Positions 6,919-23,088 of a stretch of DNA of 64,000 bases are shown here, in pieces. The position numbers and the translations under genes are program-made. Where the stretch lies: positions 1-64,000 of IMG/VR virus record IMGVR_UViG_3300009011_000002. One strand, given 5' to 3'. How positions within the stretch are numbered: position 1 is the stretch's first letter; the number at the start of each line of letters is the position of its first letter. The notes under the pieces are model-generated. The model was not told where the DNA came from. It was given only the letters and a program-made list of their open reading frames with translations, and did no database searches.

Positions 6919-8057
6919 TACATGCCTCCGTTGAGCAGCTTGACGAGGTCAGCCAGGTTGTTGGACCCGTTGTCCTTCTTGGACTTGATCGCGATGTCCT
7001 TACGGGTGTAAGTCTCGACCATGTCCATGCCATGGGTGTAGAAGGTGAAGATACCGCGGTCTTCGTCGCAGACCACGATGGTGTTGGCGTTGGTCGCCGA
7101 GAAGATTTGCTCACGCGACTTGTAGTCACGGAAACGCTTGCCGATGGAGAGCTCCAGTTTGTTCTGAGTGCTCTTATCCATGATGAAGCTGTTGGCCATG
7201 GTATTCATCGAAACGGTACCAGAGCGCAGCGCAGCGAGCTTGTTGCCAGTCTCACGGCGCATGGCTTCCTTGTAGAAGCCCGACATGTCATCGTTACGGA
7301 TCTTGAAGCGATCCTTGATGATGTCACGTCCACCCAGGAATTCAGGCCAGGTGAGTTCCTTGGTGTCCTTGGTCATGAACAGACGGATGAAGAAACCATC
7401 TTCCTGCTTGACCGCGGAGAAGATCCGTTCCATGTCGACCTGTTGGGTCGGGATCGGGATCTGGCGGAAGGTCAGCGGGATGTCCTGCTTGACGCCTTGC
7501 TCGGTGACGATGGTGGCTACCACAGTCTTACCCACGGCGAGTGGGGTGTACTCAGACACCGAGTTCAGCGACTTGCTGTCGACGTTGATGTATTCCTGAC
7601 CCGAAGGATTCTTCGACTTCGGTTCATCGCTACCGTCTTCATTACCAGCACGGCGGTAGTTCGGCAGGTTGTCGTTGAGCGCTTCACAGCCCGACAGCGA
7701 CATCATGCCACCACGGTTCGGCGAGATGGAACCGATGAGGTTTTCCATCTTGACACCGACCGCCACCGAGCTCTGCATCGACAGGTGAGTCAGGGTCGCG
7801 ACGATGTCACGAAGCATGACAACACCCATCACATCCTGCATGTATTCCTGGTGCAGGAGACTGGCTTCCACACCCACCAAAGGCGCGATAATTGCACGGT
7901 TCGCGGACTTGTGGACCGAGCTGGTCGAGACCACATTGTATGAATGTCGAACTTTGCCCGCCACGTCGGCGGCGGCACCTATGTCTTTGCTATCCGGATA
8001 AATCTGCTTCGCGATATCCAGGAAGAAAGACCCCAAGTTTAATACTGCACCAATCAT
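6918..8057 (-). CDS. inner-body head protein (phiKZ gp89-like by synteny)
   Basis: 379 aa; internal SGCE and RAGNED sites; divergent from the next gene as in the phiKZ gp88/89 arrangement. Confidence 0.6.
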   Translation of the reverse strand: MIGAVLNLGSFFLDIAKQIYPDSKDIGAAADVAGKVRHSYNVVSTSSVHKSANRAIIAPLVGVEASLLHQEYMQDVMGVVMLRDIVATLTHLSMQSSVAVGVKMENLIGSISPNRGGMMSLSGCEALNDNLPNYRRAGNEDGSDEPKSKNPSGQEYINVDSKSLNSVSEYTPLAVGKTVVATIVTEQGVKQDIPLTFRQIPIPTQQVDMERIFSAVKQEDGFFIRLFMTKDTKELTWPEFLGGRDIIKDRFKIRNDDMSGFYKEAMRRETGNKLAALRSGTVSMNTMANSFIMDKSTQNKLELSIGKRFRDYKSREQIFSATNANTIVVCDEDRGIFTFYTHGMDMVETYTRKDIAIKSKKDNGSNNLADLVKLLNGGM

Positions 8058-8087
8058 AGTCTTTACCTGTTAATGGGAGCCAATGTA

Positions 8088-9176
8088 ATGGCTGATGATC
8101 CAAATGCTTTCGATGGATGGTATGTTAGTACCCCGGGTAACCAGGAACCGAACGATCCACTAAGCGCCCAAAACCTTTACGAGTGGATCGAGTACGCCTT
8201 CACTGAGAACGGTGGCCCCGGTTACCAAAGCGCACTCATCAACATGTTGAAAGGCGTCCGGATATTGGGTCCTGGGAACCAGATGGCCCCCATCCCAGAC
8301 GACACCATAGGATTAGTGTTCATGAACCGGCCGTTACTGAACCTTTCCGATGAAAATGTCATCAAGCATCCCCAGCTTTTGACGTACTACAACCCACCCC
8401 GTAATACCTTGCAGCACTACATCAAGGGTCTGCTGGACCCAGTCTGGGGTCGGGGTAACAGCGGTAACAGTGATTTGCTCGACCCCCTGTATCCGTGGAT
8501 TGCACCGATCACCAACTTGGTGAAGGTTTCCACCGGCTTCCCTGATATCGGGTTGAACGTCTCAACGAGTCAGCCGGGTATTCGTAAAGAAGTTTATCAG
8601 TATGTCGACGGCATCCTAAAGGTCAACTACAACTACGACATGCGGATGAGCTTCTACCCGTGTAAGCCCAATATCATTCCTACCATCTTCGACGTGTGGA
8701 ACCACTACATCGAAGGTGTGAAGTTGGGTGATGAAGGCATGGAGCCTTACGCGGAAGCGTTGATCCAGAACTACCGGGACTTCGACTGCCGGGTGTACCA
8801 CATCATCCTCAACAAGAACATGCGTAACATCGAGGGCATTTACTGTAATGGCTATGCGTGGCCAAACAGTTATCCATCGGGTGCGTTCTCCACCATTGAC
8901 CGGACAGGCACTACCCTGCGGGGTCAAGGTCAGGACGACGTGGAAATCAACTTCCCGAGCGTGGCCTTCCGTTACAACAACCTGCAGATCGCGGACCAGT
9001 TCAACCGCACCACGTTGTTCTTCAACCCAAACATGCACCCAAGTGTACGGAACAGCTACTACCGGAAGTTAGCGTTCAGCGAATACTTCGGTGGTGGTTA
9101 CCACGCCTACCCTTGGATCAACCTTAACACGATGGAAATGGAATACTGGAGTAAGCTTGATGGCACTCTCTCATGA
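8088..9176 (+). CDS. virion structural protein (phiKZ gp88-like; tail/baseplate)
   Basis: ATG 8088 with GGGAG RBS; beta-rich tail-tube-like stretches; synteny. Confidence 0.55.
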   Translation: MADDPNAFDGWYVSTPGNQEPNDPLSAQNLYEWIEYAFTENGGPGYQSALINMLKGVRILGPGNQMAPIPDDTIGLVFMNRPLLNLSDENVIKHPQLLTYYNPPRNTLQHYIKGLLDPVWGRGNSGNSDLLDPLYPWIAPITNLVKVSTGFPDIGLNVSTSQPGIRKEVYQYVDGILKVNYNYDMRMSFYPCKPNIIPTIFDVWNHYIEGVKLGDEGMEPYAEALIQNYRDFDCRVYHIILNKNMRNIEGIYCNGYAWPNSYPSGAFSTIDRTGTTLRGQGQDDVEINFPSVAFRYNNLQIADQFNRTTLFFNPNMHPSVRNSYYRKLAFSEYFGGGYHAYPWINLNTMEMEYWSKLDGTLS

Positions 9177-18215: not shown

Positions 18216-19292
18216 TTACAGACCAAACACACCAACCAGGTCTTTGTGCGCCGCGGTTACGCGGGTGAAGTTGGCGTGAATCAGCTTGGAGATCTGAGTC
18301 GCGCCGACCATCACAGTACGCATGGCCGCGATTTCGGACTGGAGGCTCTTCTTGTCGCTCGCGTCCTTGGCCTTTTTCATCTTGGCTTCGGTAGCGGTGA
18401 TCAACGACTGGATTTTGCCTTTCTTGGCGTTGAAGGTGGACGCCAACGCTTTCAGCGCGTCGATGTTCTTCTTCGCAGCTTCACCGAAAGCAACGGCCGC
18501 TTGCGGGGTGTTGATGCTGGTAGCACCTTCCAACGACTTGAGGAAGTTGGCTTCACCCATGGAGAACTTGGCAACTTCGGAACTCATCTCAACCAGCAGG
18601 TGAGCCGCCGCATGGTCTTTGTCCGCCAGTTTGGCAGCAGCAGCACCTTGCTTGGCGTCGCCTTTGGCCGAACCGAAGGAGCCGCTGAGGAATGCTTTCT
18701 TGGCCTTGACCGCCGCCCCGACGGTGCCTTCCAGCTTCTTCTTCGCAGCGCCCGACATGGAACCCATCTTCTTCAGGGCATCCTTGATCGCCTTCTTCTT
18801 CTCGGCAGGGGTCTTGGCTGCCTTCAGCGCCTCGGCCTCTTTGCCATCAACCTGGCCAGCCAGCTTGGTAGCTTGGGCGTTGGCCTGTTCGTCGGTCTGA
18901 GTACCGGCTTCCGCCTTCTTCAGCTCTTCGTTCTTTTCGTCGATGGCTTCTTTGGCCTCGTCGCCTTCTTTCGCGGCGTCGCGGTTGAAGAAGAAGTTCC
19001 AGATCGAGGTGAAGGTTTTCTTGATGTAGTCCCACACGGCCTTGAAGCCGTTGCCGATGGCCGAGAACACACCTTCTTCGTTACCCGCACGCATGCCGTA
19101 CTTGATGCCGTTGGCGTCGAGTACAGCCACCGCGTAATGCTGGGCCTGGGTCAGGTTGTTGAAGCGGGGCAGGCTTTCAGTGCCCTCGACAGCCGCGGTA
19201 TGCTCCAAGGCGTCGAACATGATTTCCATGTGCGGGGCATCCGGGACAGTGTAACCATCCGGGGATACTTCGTAGTCTTCTGCGTATTCCAT
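18216..19292 (-). CDS. internal head protein paralog, Lys/Ala-rich
   Basis: RAGNE|EGVFSAIGNGFKAVWDYIKKTFTSIWNFFF: same site-plus-helix pattern; AAGGA RBS. Confidence 0.7.
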   Translation of the reverse strand: MEYAEDYEVSPDGYTVPDAPHMEIMFDALEHTAAVEGTESLPRFNNLTQAQHYAVAVLDANGIKYGMRAGNEEGVFSAIGNGFKAVWDYIKKTFTSIWNFFFNRDAAKEGDEAKEAIDEKNEELKKAEAGTQTDEQANAQATKLAGQVDGKEAEALKAAKTPAEKKKAIKDALKKMGSMSGAAKKKLEGTVGAAVKAKKAFLSGSFGSAKGDAKQGAAAAKLADKDHAAAHLLVEMSSEVAKFSMGEANFLKSLEGATSINTPQAAVAFGEAAKKNIDALKALASTFNAKKGKIQSLITATEAKMKKAKDASDKKSLQSEIAAMRTVMVGATQISKLIHANFTRVTAAHKDLVGVFGL

Positions 19293-19961: not shown

Positions 19962-20016
19962 CGGAAGGGCCCTTTCGATTGAGATATTAGAAATAGGTGT
20001 ATCCGTTAAACAGCAT

Positions 20017-20054
20017 AAAATACCCCCGGCAGCCGAAGCCACCGGGGGTATTTT
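20017..20054 (-). terminator. intrinsic terminator
   Basis: AAAATACCCCCGG/CCGGGGGTATTTT stem right after the stop at 20057. Confidence 0.75.
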
Positions 20055-20056
20055 AA

Positions 20057-20518
20057 CTAGAGCTTGACGTCCTTCAGGGTGTCTTTCAGACCCAGTGCTT
20101 TGATGATCTCGTCTTGGGCTTTCTGTATCGGGTCTTTATCCGTGGTAGGCTTCTCTGGGTTGTCCAGTTTGTAGCGAGTGCTCTCGCCTTCCACCAGACC
20201 GTCCAGTAAAGCATCTACCATGGCAACAGGCCACGTCATGTACTGTTCCAAGGTCATGACTTCTTTGATCTTGTTGAACCCGAACGTCTTCCCACTCGAC
20301 TCCCACGACCACGGGTGATAGAACTTGTGTTCACCCGGGGTGTAGGCAACCGAGGCATGGGGGCTTCGCTTTTGTCCGCTGTAGCCCATGTTGATTTGAT
20401 ACAACATGAGCTCGTTGAATACCAGCGACTCTGGCAAAACCCCTTCTAACGATTGACCCAAGAGGCGGCTGTTGATGGTGTGATAGAGATCACTGGTCCA
20501 CAACCGCCCCTTAACCAT
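20057..20518 (-). CDS. tail/baseplate assembly chaperone C-terminal part (GT/T4 gp51-like), probably made by -1 frameshift
   Basis: no SD before ATG 20518; frame is open back to the slippery site at 20599-20605; MTLEQYMTWP resembles gp51/GT-type motifs. Confidence 0.55.
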   Translation of the reverse strand: MVKGRLWTSDLYHTINSRLLGQSLEGVLPESLVFNELMLYQINMGYSGQKRSPHASVAYTPGEHKFYHPWSWESSGKTFGFNKIKEVMTLEQYMTWPVAMVDALLDGLVEGESTRYKLDNPEKPTTDKDPIQKAQDEIIKALGLKDTLKDVKL

Positions 20519-20523
20519 CGGCG

Positions 20524-22242
20524 TTAGTCGGAGAGGGCTCCTTGGAGTGCCTTCTGAGATACGACCGCCAGGTTCACAATCATCAATTGGGTGTGGATAA
20601 AAAAACTCATGATCGGATCGATCGGAGTGTAGCCCAATGGACGGTCGAGGAACTGTTCAGGGTCCTGGTGGTCAGCGCTGTTGCCACCGCACTTCGGACA
20701 CACGTAGTTCGCCACACCGGTGAAGGTACGGGACATGTACGGCGTCTTGTTCAGGATGAACTTGGTCAGGTTGGCGTTCATCGAGTCATGGTCGAGGACC
20801 ACGTCATAGATGCCCTTGTAGTAGTCCGCCAGGTCTTCCTCTTCCTCGCGAACATAGACGATATCTTCCTCGTCAGTGTTCGGTGGAGCCAGGTCAACAA
20901 ACTTCGACACCCAGTGGATGTACTCGGTCGCACCGATGTCGGCGTACGCCAAGCTGATTTGGGTGTCGTATTCGTCCGGGCTGGTGACCTTGGAACGAAT
21001 AGCACCCAGGCGCGGGTTCACCTGACTGATGAAGTAGTCGAAGCACTGGAAGGCCTGCGACAGGGTTGGGGCAGCGATTTCGAAGTACATGTTCTTCTCA
21101 TCGTTCCATACCCGGTCATCTTCCAGATTGAACTTCGACGCCAGGCTCAGCGCACGGGTTTCTTCCAGCGTCAGCTTGATCAGCTTGTTCTGGAGGTTAC
21201 CCAGGATGGCCAGCTCTTCGTCAGTGGTAACACCCGGGCGGTTCTGCGACAGCAGGGTCGGGTCCACCAACGAGAAGTTGTCCCAGTCGCACTGAGTGTT
21301 CAGGCAACGCAGGTTCATGTTGGTGCCACGATGGCTGGTGGCTTCGATCAGCGCCGTACAGATACGGTCGAAGTCGGTGATGGTGATGACTTCAGCCAAC
21401 TGGTTATAGTCGACAATGTCAGACACCGACGAACTGTTGATGTACTGCACCAGGAAGTCCCAGATGACCTTCATGGCAGCAACACGCGCCAGCACGGCGT
21501 TGTTGTTGTTGATGGAACGCACGTAACCAGTAACGGTACGGCGGATGTCGTTGACCAGGTTGCCCAGCAGGGTACGGTTTGGACGGGTGAAGTTCAGCTG
21601 CACGAACGAGTTGCGCAGCAACAGGTCGAACTGGAGGGTTTTACCTGCAGCCTTCGCCGAAGAACGACGCATGCCTTCCGACGTCTTGAAACCGCTACGC
21701 TTACGCGAAGGGGTTTGGGCGACGATGTCGGCGGTTACGAATTCACCACCACGGTTGTGGATGTTGGTGATACCCTTCTCGGTCATGACCTTGGAGCGCA
21801 CGCGCAGTTCGTCTTGCACTTCGCTCATGAAGACGTACAGTTCTTTGGCGTAGTTCGCCACGTCTTCTGCAGTCTTGCCAGGGAAGGTAGTGGTAACGTA
21901 TTCGTTCCACTTGTCTTTGGCCTGGGCCATGGCGGTGTCGGTCATTTGATCGGCTTCGAACAGTTCCACCACCGCACGGTAGCCCAGCCATTCCTTGATG
22001 ACCGCTTGCGCCGCCATCACATCTTTCTTGGAGTTGCCCAGGAAGATGCTGATGAAACCTTGTTCCTTCTCTTCCTCGGTCAGCTCACGAATGATCGGGC
22101 TGCGGGGAGGAAGGTAGTCCTTCAGCGGGGTGGTTTCCGCCGTTTGCTTGTCCTTGAAACCAGCACGGGTTTCAGGCTTTGCAGGAGCCTGTTCGGCAGG
22201 TTGTCCCTGTTCGGAACCCTGGTCCATTTCATGTTCGCTCAT
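20524..22242 (-). CDS. tail/baseplate hub assembly chaperone-like protein (T4 gp26-like C-terminus)
   Basis: 572 aa; CLNTQC and CPKCG Zn-ribbon pairs; C-terminal PIDPIMSFF. Confidence 0.5.
   Translation of the reverse strand: MSEHEMDQGSEQGQPAEQAPAKPETRAGFKDKQTAETTPLKDYLPPRSPIIRELTEEEKEQGFISIFLGNSKKDVMAAQAVIKEWLGYRAVVELFEADQMTDTAMAQAKDKWNEYVTTTFPGKTAEDVANYAKELYVFMSEVQDELRVRSKVMTEKGITNIHNRGGEFVTADIVAQTPSRKRSGFKTSEGMRRSSAKAAGKTLQFDLLLRNSFVQLNFTRPNRTLLGNLVNDIRRTVTGYVRSINNNNAVLARVAAMKVIWDFLVQYINSSSVSDIVDYNQLAEVITITDFDRICTALIEATSHRGTNMNLRCLNTQCDWDNFSLVDPTLLSQNRPGVTTDEELAILGNLQNKLIKLTLEETRALSLASKFNLEDDRVWNDEKNMYFEIAAPTLSQAFQCFDYFISQVNPRLGAIRSKVTSPDEYDTQISLAYADIGATEYIHWVSKFVDLAPPNTDEEDIVYVREEEEDLADYYKGIYDVVLDHDSMNANLTKFILNKTPYMSRTFTGVANYVCPKCGGNSADHQDPEQFLDRPLGYTPIDPIMSFFIHTQLMIVNLAVVSQKALQGALSD
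20599..20605 (-). promoter_or_regulatory. candidate -1 programmed ribosomal frameshift heptamer T TTT TTT
   Basis: AGT TTT TTT ATC in a gene that otherwise prefers TTC; -1 frame has no stop between the heptamer and ATG 20518. Confidence 0.7.
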
Positions 22243-22257
22243 TGCTTAGCGCCCTTA

Positions 22258-23049
22258 TTAGCAGGTAACTGGGTCGTGGATGTTTTTGGCCAGTTCGATG
22301 GCGACGTCAGCATCAACGTCATCTTCTTCTACCAACTCACCGCCCAGAGGCGCGGTCATGTCGGCGTGGACGGTCTGGCCGGTACGGTACTGGTCAGCCA
22401 CACGGTTCATACGGATTTCGTGCAGGCCGTAGCTGAACTGCACCATGGTCACGTCTTCCGGGGTGTGCTCTTTCACGAACGCGTCCACCAGCGGTTTGAT
22501 GCCGTTCATGGTGCCGCCGTAGATGCTCGGGATCTGCAGCTGCATCACTTCGGCCATCAGGTCGATGTAGTGCGTGAAGATCTCCATGTAGTCGTCTGGC
22601 TTCTTGCCGACTTCGATGAAGTCGTACATCGCATTGATGTCTTCGGTGATGCCGACGACAGCGCGGTCGTAACCGGCGAACTCGAGCAGCTGTTCAGTGG
22701 TCAGGGTGATCTTCTTCTCGGTGTGGAGACGATCAGCCACTTCGATCAGACCGTGGAAGTGGGCGAACACCGGGATGGTCTCGGTGATCATCTTCAGGAT
22801 GCCGACGTTGGTGAACTTACGACCGGACTTCTTGCCGCCTTTGCGTTGCGTGGCCAGGTCTTGGGCTACCGCCAAGATACCTTTGGTGGCGATCTCCAGC
22901 GACAGCTGCTGATCAGCTTGTGCACGGGCCTTACGCTGTGCAGCAAACTTAGTCTGTTCCGCCTGATGTTCTTTCGACTTACGGGCAGCGTCACGGGCTT
23001 TGGCTTTAGCCTGTTTGCGCTGTACTGCTTTCTGATTCTTACCGGACAT
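22258..23049 (-). CDS. hypothetical protein, basic N-terminus
   Basis: 263 aa, AAGGGA RBS, strong codon bias. Confidence 0.7.
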   Translation of the reverse strand: MSGKNQKAVQRKQAKAKARDAARKSKEHQAEQTKFAAQRKARAQADQQLSLEIATKGILAVAQDLATQRKGGKKSGRKFTNVGILKMITETIPVFAHFHGLIEVADRLHTEKKITLTTEQLLEFAGYDRAVVGITEDINAMYDFIEVGKKPDDYMEIFTHYIDLMAEVMQLQIPSIYGGTMNGIKPLVDAFVKEHTPEDVTMVQFSYGLHEIRMNRVADQYRTGQTVHADMTAPLGGELVEEDDVDADVAIELAKNIHDPVTC

Positions 23050-23088
23050 ATGCTATGATTCCCTTAACAGGTAGACGGGTAAGTCCCA

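Follow-up and report, generated by a model that had tools for sequence, protein, structure and literature searches.

A phage gene of 572 codons that carries an uninterrupted run of seven T residues close to its 3′-end, followed by a short open reading frame in the -1 frame, raises the question of whether two genes are present or one gene that is read in two ways. The locus lies in a 64-kb stretch of DNA from a phiKZ-like, nucleus-forming jumbo phage, derived from a metagenome assembly (hereafter, the window). An earlier note, based on the sequence alone, proposed that a programmed -1 frameshift fuses the two reading frames, and that the products form a tape-measure chaperone system of the lambda G/GT type that resembles T4 gp26/gp51. 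The observation on which the note rested is confirmed by our analysis; its interpretation is supported only in part, strongly so for the recoding site but not for the function (see below).

A slippery heptamer near the end of ORF1

The minus strand reads CCG ATC ATG AGT TTT TTT ATC CAC ACC, and the T run starts at the third position of a codon of ORF1, which makes it an in-phase X_XXY_YYZ heptamer, T_TTT_TTT (Table 1). The -1 frame reads FFYPHPIDDCEPGGRISEGTPRSPLRLTPMVKGRLW... and has no stop codon down to position 20057; it is the frame of the 153-aa ORF found downstream. The predicted products are a protein of 572 aa and a fusion of 546 + 182 = 728 aa, in which FF would run directly into the -1 frame (...MSFFYPHPIDDCEPGGR in the window; ...STFFYFGGLEVK in phiKZ). 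The ATG at which the 153-aa ORF begins has no Shine-Dalgarno (SD) sequence at a usable distance, the only AAGGAG being located 19 nt upstream. Elsewhere in ORF1, TTT is used once and TTC 22 times. Of the T7/A7 runs in the window, this is the only one inside a long ORF; the other three are intergenic, and four runs were found where 8.5 are expected.

Table 1. Features of the proposed frameshift locus, in coordinates of the window (L numbers designate lineages of our comparison).
Coordinates	Strand	Feature	Description
20524..22242	-	ORF1	0-frame product of 572 aa; ortholog of EL gp47, phiKZ gp77 and 201phi2-1 gp136 (phrog_4585); four conserved Cys (C313, C318, C515, C518) and an invariant FF at 547-548; AF2 model with pLDDT 85.7 and pTM 0.85
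20599..20605	-	Slippery heptamer T_TTT_TTT	Read as AG[T TTT TTT] in the 0 frame; both the P-site and the A-site codon are Phe
20524..20598	-	Dual-coding overlap	0 frame: C-terminal helix tail IHTQLMIVNLAVVSQKALQGALSD plus the stop (helix 543-571 in the model); -1 frame: Pro/Gly-rich linker YPHPIDDCEPGGRISEGTPRSPL..., predicted disordered
20057..20598	-	-1 frame extension	180 aa after the heptamer, plus the stop; linker followed by a helical C-terminal domain of about 150 aa (phrog_19747)
20057..20518	-	Mechanically called 153-aa ORF	ATG 5 nt after the ORF1 stop, no SD, not conserved: GTG in the 83%-identical relative L017, no start codon in L005 and L018
20016..20055	-	Intrinsic terminator	18-bp stem and T tract directly after the stop of the extension; marks the end of the transcription unit; similar hairpins follow the extension in EL, RisingSun and phiKZ
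20623-20611		Hairpin just upstream of the heptamer	Not conserved in EL or RisingSun; not retained as a candidate element

Since homopolymer runs are error-prone, and the window comes from a metagenome assembly, we considered whether the arrangement could reflect a sequencing error (a run of T8 or T6 in reality) or a recent frameshift mutation that splits a single 728-aa gene. Contigs from two other soil metagenomes lie across the T7 without indels, although only 27-28 of their letters lie on one side of it; being assembled contigs, they bear on the sequence and not on slippage or expression. However, the same arrangement, with a conserved 0-frame tail and stop, is found in 29 independently sequenced genomes, including cultured reference phages (see below), and this explanation is extremely unlikely. 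Searches for closer relatives returned little: megablast against the phage collection found no close relative, and scans of IMG/VR returned only the source contig, one relative at 53% identity, and EL and RisingSun.

Conservation of the heptamer and of the open -1 frame

We next compared 29 lineages of phiKZ-related jumbo phages, including EL, RisingSun, phiKZ, 201phi2-1, PCH45, SPN3US and a Bacillus phage, at 12-88% identity. The heptamer is in phase in 29 of 29 lineages and reads T_TTT_TTT, T_TTT_TTC or T_TTT_TTA in 28 of them; the remaining lineage, the phiPA3-like HHBS36_1, has the weaker A_TTT_TTC. In the 28 canonical lineages the preceding codon is AGT, AAT, GCT, ACT, GGT, CTT or GTT, that is, seven different amino acids are encoded but always by a codon ending in T, which is beyond what the protein requires. 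Codon bias also runs against the heptamer: the ratio of TTT to TTC elsewhere in the gene is 1:22 in the window, 0:21 in L022 and 0:14 in Xoo-sp14.

The downstream ORF is in the -1 frame in 29 of 29 lineages, with gaps that range from -4 to 218 nt and all equal 2 mod 3, and the -1 frame is open from the heptamer to the downstream stop in every lineage. The chance of this per lineage is 0.0002-0.65 (product 5e-41, although the lineages are not independent), whereas the +1 frame usually closes within 2-13 codons; the comparison of the 29 lineages shows that the arrangement is far more than chance. The extension is homologous along its whole length and constant in size, at 154-183 aa, while the called starts fall at extension positions 28-87 and use ATG, GTG or TTG with no consistent SD. 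EL, RisingSun, CF8 and phiKZ have no ATG, GTG or TTG for 56-87 codons after the heptamer. The segments upstream of the called starts are nevertheless conserved like coding sequence: in phiKZ against a phiPA3-like phage, 68 codons of the unannotated 218-nt gap are 46% identical, against 36% for the annotated part, and PDCC-1 against VP4B gives a dN/dS of 0.18; the tblastn matches also extend upstream of the annotated starts. The -1 linker inside the overlap, however, evolves at a dN/dS of about 1. All three of the comparative tests by which the note had said its proposal could be refuted were passed: the heptamer is conserved, the -1 linker is open in every ortholog, and there is no conserved independent start.

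These data also bear on the possibility that two ordinary genes are present, the 153-aa protein being made on its own by re-initiation or coupling at the ATG close to the ORF1 stop, and the T run being simply how Ser-Phe-Phe happens to be encoded. Gene callers annotate two genes everywhere, and stop-start proximity and ATGA overlaps automatically give a -1 frame relation, as in 201phi2-1; in the window, some independent re-initiation cannot be excluded. Nevertheless, that ATG is not conserved even in the 83%-identical relative, the called starts scatter over 60 codons, the T-ending codon is kept across seven amino acids and against a strong TTC bias, and the -1 frame is also open through the 9-45 codon overlap, which coupling does not require. 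We consider this explanation very unlikely.

A profile of the extension found 70 proteins among 1.84 billion representative proteins. Apart from one marginal hit of 393 aa (E = 2e-4), all are 61-172 aa and their matches begin at profile positions 9-124; none is a natural in-frame fusion, and no single-ORF version was found in this set.

Ribosomal frameshifting or transcriptional slippage

The best explanation, to which we assign a probability of about 0.8, is a programmed -1 ribosomal frameshift site that is ancient and conserved throughout the phiKZ-related jumbo phages. In this view, one mRNA, ended by the terminator, carries ORF1 and the extension, and most ribosomes read ORF1 to its TAA and make a 572-aa protein that ends in an amphipathic helix. 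At U_UUU_UUU, Phe-tRNAs would occupy both the P and the A site and both could re-pair one base upstream, such that a fraction of ribosomes would continue in the -1 frame, replacing the last 24 residues by a Pro/Gly-rich linker of about 25 aa and a helical domain of about 150 aa. The C-terminal domain appears to depend largely or wholly on the shift for its synthesis, and the heptamer would set the ratio of the two forms. What our analysis establishes is the anatomy of the locus and its conservation; that the ribosome does the shifting, at what efficiency, and the existence of the 728-aa product are inferred, in the absence of peptide, Ribo-seq or reporter data, and a role for the pair as a morphogenetic (baseplate hub or tail) assembly chaperone related to T4 gp26/gp51 is only a lead.

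U_UU.U_UU.Y heptamers are among the efficient -1 shift motifs in E. coli and are used by IS elements (PMC4066793). However, we found no stimulatory element: RNAalifold predicts 0 pairs on 15 sequences, the 70 nt after the heptamer are less structured than the gene background (mean z of +0.69 for the per-lineage MFE), and no SD is seen 10-14 nt upstream. Efficiency may therefore be low; such elements are common but not obligatory.

The lack of a detected stimulator leaves room for transcriptional slippage, in which the phage or host RNA polymerase would add one extra U at the T run in a fraction of transcripts, since a one-base insertion gives exactly the same protein as a -1 shift. Moreover, U7 and A7 runs are depleted in genes, partly because of slippage (PMC4066793), in line with the deficit seen in the window. 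Yet the run is short and of variable length, with five T in the phiPA3-like phage, six in the Vibrio and Aeromonas clades and seven to eight elsewhere, and what stays fixed is the codon phase and the TTT TTY pair, which fits tRNA re-pairing better than polymerase slippage. Productive bacterial slippage usually needs runs of about nine, a length that need not apply to the polymerases of these phages. Slippage is thus possible but unlikely.

We found no published description of this frameshift; no paper or supplement that we found mentions these genes, and the Grad-seq supplements do not list the phiKZ genes. It would be the first recoding event that we could find for this group. The phiKZ-like phages are the main models for the phage nucleus and are candidates for therapy, yet hundreds of their genomes annotate this locus as two hypothetical genes, as the note had anticipated. 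If the shift is real, a conserved protein of about 730 aa is missing from every proteome, interaction map and knock-down design, and an antisense or Cas13 knock-down of the "small gene" would in fact hit the fusion. The site also offers a simple test case for frameshifting on a heptamer that seems to lack a stimulator.

Relationship to known frameshift systems and to T4 hub assembly chaperones

In lambda G/GT and P2 E/E+E′, a conserved -1 frameshift in tail genes of long-tailed phages produces tail assembly chaperones. As predicted here, the shift takes place on an X_XXY_YYZ heptamer near the end of a phage gene, yields a short and a C-terminally extended form that share their N-terminal part and would set a fixed ratio, and annotation commonly splits the pair into two genes. 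The analogy holds for the mechanism and not for family membership. ORF1 is 572 aa long rather than about 100-150 aa; no Pfam family was matched at E up to 10, either by the window proteins or by 18 family members, and PHROGs gives only families of unknown function. In addition, the gene is not next to a tape-measure gene, its neighbors being small ORFs, a DNA polymerase and an RNA polymerase subunit, and it is followed by a terminator. The tape-measure chaperone function proposed in the note is not shown. The E. coli dnaX (tau/gamma) and IS3/IS911 orfAB sites are also bacterial-type -1 shifts on a homopolymeric heptamer, and U_UU.U_UU.C occurs in IS elements; those sites, however, have strong stimulators (a downstream hairpin or pseudoknot, an upstream SD, or both), and dnaX shortens the protein whereas the site described here would lengthen it.

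We also tested whether the protein is PicA/Imp1, the nuclear import protein (phiKZ gp69). This identity was rejected: BLASTP against gp69 gave E = 0.85 with no alignment of note, and by synteny and C-terminal motif the phiKZ ortholog is gp77.

The note had likened the CPKCG...SFF ending and an MTLEQYMTWP motif to the T4 gp26/gp51 baseplate hub assembly chaperones (PF12322, T4_baseplate). Sequence tests for that family fail. None of 18 diverse members matches PF12322 at E <= 0.01, whereas T4 gp26 homologs all carry it, and hhalign probabilities are 21% against gp51, 3.6% against gp26 and 1.4% family against family; for the extension, which contains the MTLEQYM motif, the probability against gp26 is 0.4%, and there is no significant match to ORF1 itself. 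The AF2 model of the extension is too uncertain (pLDDT 58.9) for use in a fold search, and the ORF1 model has no PDB match with E below 1. Weak links come from structure and language-model searches: Foldseek on BFVD links the ORF1 model to "baseplate hub assembly protein, T4-like" and "baseplate hub subunit" entries with a probability of 0.95-0.98, but with E of only 7.5e-3 to 5e-2 and TM of 0.20-0.28 by query and 0.38-0.57 by target, and ESM Atlas neighbors with PF12322 score 0.90 by features and TM 0.44 by structure.

A more far-reaching reading, which we regard as tentative, is that all phiKZ-related jumbo phages share an obligatory -1 frameshift in a core gene, kept since before the Gram-negative and Bacillus lineages split, which works on a bare U_UUU_UUY heptamer with no RNA stimulator and is the only route to the C-terminal domain. 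The two forms would then be the jumbo-phage and T4-superfamily (gp26/gp51) counterpart of the G/GT pair, and the rule of a conserved frameshift in tail assembly genes would extend to a phage group thought to lack it. The locus hints that the two-product logic of phage assembly chaperones reaches the T4 and jumbo-phage hub chaperones.

Some orthologs are annotated as baseplate or hub assembly proteins, and both ORF1 and the T4 proteins have two Cys pairs and a C-terminal FF after the CPxC knuckle. The T4 proteins, however, are 208-249 aa. T4 gene 26 also gives two nested products, gp26 and gp26′, but by internal initiation and not by a frameshift, and its end has no slippery run, reading GAG TTC TTT GAG.

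A heptameric T run at the end of the 572-aa ORF

On the minus strand, the 572-aa ORF ends in ...PIDPIMSFFIHTQLMIVNLAVVSQKALQGALSD*, and the DNA there reads ATG AGT TTT TTT ATC; the seven T's begin at the third position of the Ser codon, and thus form an in-phase X_XXY_YYZ heptamer, T_TTT_TTT. From the heptamer, the -1 frame reads FFYPHPIDDCEPGGRISEGTPRSPLRLTP, then MVKGRLW..., and has no stop until 20057; it is the frame of the downstream 153-aa ORF, whose ATG lies 5 nt after the TAA and has no usable SD. The products would be of 572 aa and of 546 + 182 = 728 aa. The earlier note had described this heptamer and the open -1 frame from the sequence alone, and the observation is confirmed. Elsewhere the gene uses TTT once and TTC 22 times. 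Four T7/A7 runs are present in the 64-kb window, where 8.5 are expected, and this is the only one inside a long ORF. The window is part of the IMG/VR contig IMGVR_UViG_3300009011_000002 (226,773 bp); contigs from two other soil metagenomes lie across the run without indels, though with only 27-28 letters on one side of it.

Coordinates of the features in the window and in the records used for comparison
Sequence	Coordinates	Strand	Feature
Window	20524-22242	minus	572-aa ORF (ORF1)
Window	20599-20605	minus	T_TTT_TTT heptamer
Window	20057-20518	minus	153-aa ORF in the -1 frame (ATG at 20518)
Window	20016-20055	minus	Intrinsic terminator
Window	20611-20623	minus	Small hairpin
Window	18216-19292	minus	358-aa ORF
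Window	20542-23058	plus	838-aa shadow ORF
L016 (phiKZ, NC_004629)	21686-21903 (record 71685-71902)	minus	218-nt gap between PHIKZ077 and PHIKZ076.4
L028 (Pseudomonas phage HHBS36_1, phiPA3-like)	around 3061		A_TTT_TTC heptamer
L033 (Bacillus phage vB_BspM_AgentSmith)	around 2573		T_TTT_TTA heptamer
L026 (T4)	7803-8429		Gene 26
L026 (T4)	7803-8090		26'

Several other features surround the site. A small hairpin, GATCG-ATC-CGATC, ends right before ATGAGTTTTTTT; it is encoded by PIDPI and is not conserved in EL or RisingSun. The 838-aa ORF lies antisense to ORF1 and its upstream neighbour and is a shadow ORF of the G+C-rich coding strand, not a gene. Two genes downstream, in the same position as EL gp50, is the 358-aa ORF, which is very rich in Ala and Lys and looks helical and of low complexity.

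Orthologs in other jumbo phages

No close DNA relative was found in the phage collection. However, tblastn searches identified orthologs of both ORFs, adjacent to each other, in EL-like, RisingSun-like, Vibrio, Aeromonas, Klebsiella and other jumbo phages, at 25-38% identity. In one EL-like record, that of Pseudomonas phage vB_PQ1 (PQ516283; L010), the orthologous region is cut into many small CDS and the match comes in two pieces, suggesting indel errors in that assembly. The upstream protein belongs to phrog_4585 and the downstream protein to phrog_19747, both listed without a function, and neither has a Pfam match. By synteny and by its C-terminal motif (NCPVCES...IPIDMLSTFF), the phiKZ ortholog is gp77, and the 201phi2-1 record notes that gp136 is 'similar to phiKZ gp77 and EL gp47'; an identity with PicA/gp69 was tested and rejected. 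Relatives of gp77 occur in 226 phage records.

The heptamer and the open -1 frame are conserved across 29 lineages

We read the junction in 29 lineages: the window; ten metagenomic relatives at 40-83% identity; EL, RisingSun, FishSpeaker, Miami, PDCC-1, pTD1, VP4B, CF8 and N1M2; phiKZ, 201phi2-1, a phiPA3-like phage, Xoo-sp14, RSF1, AH06, PCH45 and SPN3US; and the Bacillus phage AgentSmith. An in-phase T_TTT_TTT, T_TTT_TTC or T_TTT_TTA is present in 28 of these. In those 28, the codon before the Phe pair is AGT, AAT, GCT, ACT, GGT, CTT or GTT, that is, seven different amino acids, every one with a T-ending codon; the selection therefore acts on the nucleotide and not on the residue. The exception is the phiPA3-like phage, HHBS36_1, which has a weakened heptamer, ATA TTT TTC (A_TTT_TTC, with 5 T); the -1 frame is still open in this phage, which may shift less often or rely on the U_UUC tetramer. 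The Gram-positive jumbo phage AgentSmith keeps the site as GTT TTT TTA, with 71 codons of open -1 frame in a 215-nt unannotated gap.

The downstream ORF is in the -1 frame in all 29 lineages, with gaps between the stop and the called start that range from -4 to 218 nt and all equal 2 mod 3. The -1 frame is also open from the heptamer to the downstream stop in all 29, whereas the +1 frame mostly closes within 2-13 codons. The chance that the -1 frame stays open is 0.0002-0.65 per lineage, for a product of 5e-41, but the lineages are related and this figure is only indicative. The extension is 154-183 aa throughout; the called starts, in contrast, sit at extension positions 28-87, use ATG, GTG or TTG, and have no consistent SD.

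Moreover, EL, RisingSun, CF8 and phiKZ have no ATG, GTG or TTG at all for 56-87 codons after the heptamer, and yet those codons align across lineages (..S.(D/E)Y...LLGK..), and tblastn matches run upstream of the annotated starts. The 'intergenic' segments are as conserved as the annotated parts: for phiKZ against the phiPA3-like phage, 68 codons are 46% identical, against 36% for the annotated part; pTD1 against VP4B gives 71% and 71%; and PDCC-1 against VP4B gives a dN/dS of 0.18. In phiKZ, this segment is the 218-nt gap, which is an open -1 frame continuation of gp77, and the reference annotation therefore misses coding sequence here.

A profile of the extension, searched against 1.84 billion representative proteins, returned 70 hits. 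Apart from one marginal hit of 393 aa (E = 2e-4), all are 61-172 aa long, with matches that begin at profile positions 9-124, the signature of gene callers choosing arbitrary internal starts; none is an in-frame fusion. The 32 closest homologs of ORF1 are likewise 535-621 aa. No sampled lineage has resolved the arrangement into one ORF, or into two genes with a fixed start.

Mechanism of the inferred shift

U_UU.U_UU.Y heptamers are among the efficient -1 motifs in E. coli, are shift-prone even without stimulators, and are used by IS elements (PMC4066793). We found no stimulator at this site: RNAalifold predicted no pairs on 15 sequences, the 70 nt after the heptamer are, if anything, less structured than windows elsewhere in the same gene (mean z +0.69), and no SD-like element lies upstream. 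The efficiency of the shift may therefore be modest. Transcriptional slippage by one U would give the same protein and cannot be excluded; however, the run length varies from 5 to 8 T while the phase and the TTT TTY pair stay fixed, which fits tRNA re-pairing better. A very strong intrinsic terminator (18-bp stem, 9 GC pairs, T tract) sits directly after the stop of the extension, so both frames sit on one transcript; equivalent hairpins follow the orthologous ORFs in EL, RisingSun and phiKZ.

The arrangement and its conservation were read directly from the sequences, whereas the shift itself is inferred from them. The comparison across lineages strongly supports recoding; we put the probability of a -1 ribosomal shift at about 0.8, and are somewhat more confident of recoding of either kind, ribosomal or transcriptional. 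Neither our full-text literature searches nor the large recoding review turned up a description of this site or of the phiKZ genes involved. Frameshifting of this kind is already known; the gene family and the phage group are new for it.

The predicted proteins and a possible link to hub assembly chaperones

AF2 gives a confident model of ORF1 (pLDDT 85.7, pTM 0.85), a mixed alpha/beta fold whose last element is helix 543-571, which is the 0-frame tail. The shift would replace that helix with a linker predicted to be disordered and a helical domain that is poorly modelled (pLDDT 58.9). The predicted ORF1 fold has no match in the PDB. In BFVD it matches jumbo-phage orthologs strongly and, more weakly, entries named 'baseplate hub assembly protein, T4-like' and 'baseplate hub subunit' (probability 0.95-0.98, E 7.5e-3 to 5e-2). 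Its ESM Atlas neighbours include clusters that carry PF12322 (T4_baseplate), and in AgentSmith the upstream gene is annotated as a 'putative baseplate hub assembly protein'.

The earlier note had proposed that the pair is a tape-measure chaperone system of the G/GT type, resembling T4 gp26/gp51. Its interpretation is supported only in part: recoding is strongly supported, but the functional label is unproven. The locus fails the positional and homology criteria of G/GT chaperones. In addition, sequence tests for the T4 family fail: 0 of 18 family members hit PF12322, and hhalign probabilities are 1.4-21%. The MTLEQYM motif, singled out in the note, does pair with FTLKEYL of gp26 in the best alignment, but at 0.4% probability. 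A role in baseplate or tail assembly is therefore a lead and not a finding. T4 gp26 is PF12322, named 'gp26 family baseplate hub assembly chaperone', and gp26 and gp51 are listed as hub assembly chaperones (PMC3004832). gp26 shares the two Cys pairs and a C-terminal FF, and T4 gene 26 is annotated with a second, nested product, 26', made from an internal start; a possible distant relative of this family therefore also makes two products from one gene, by a different route.
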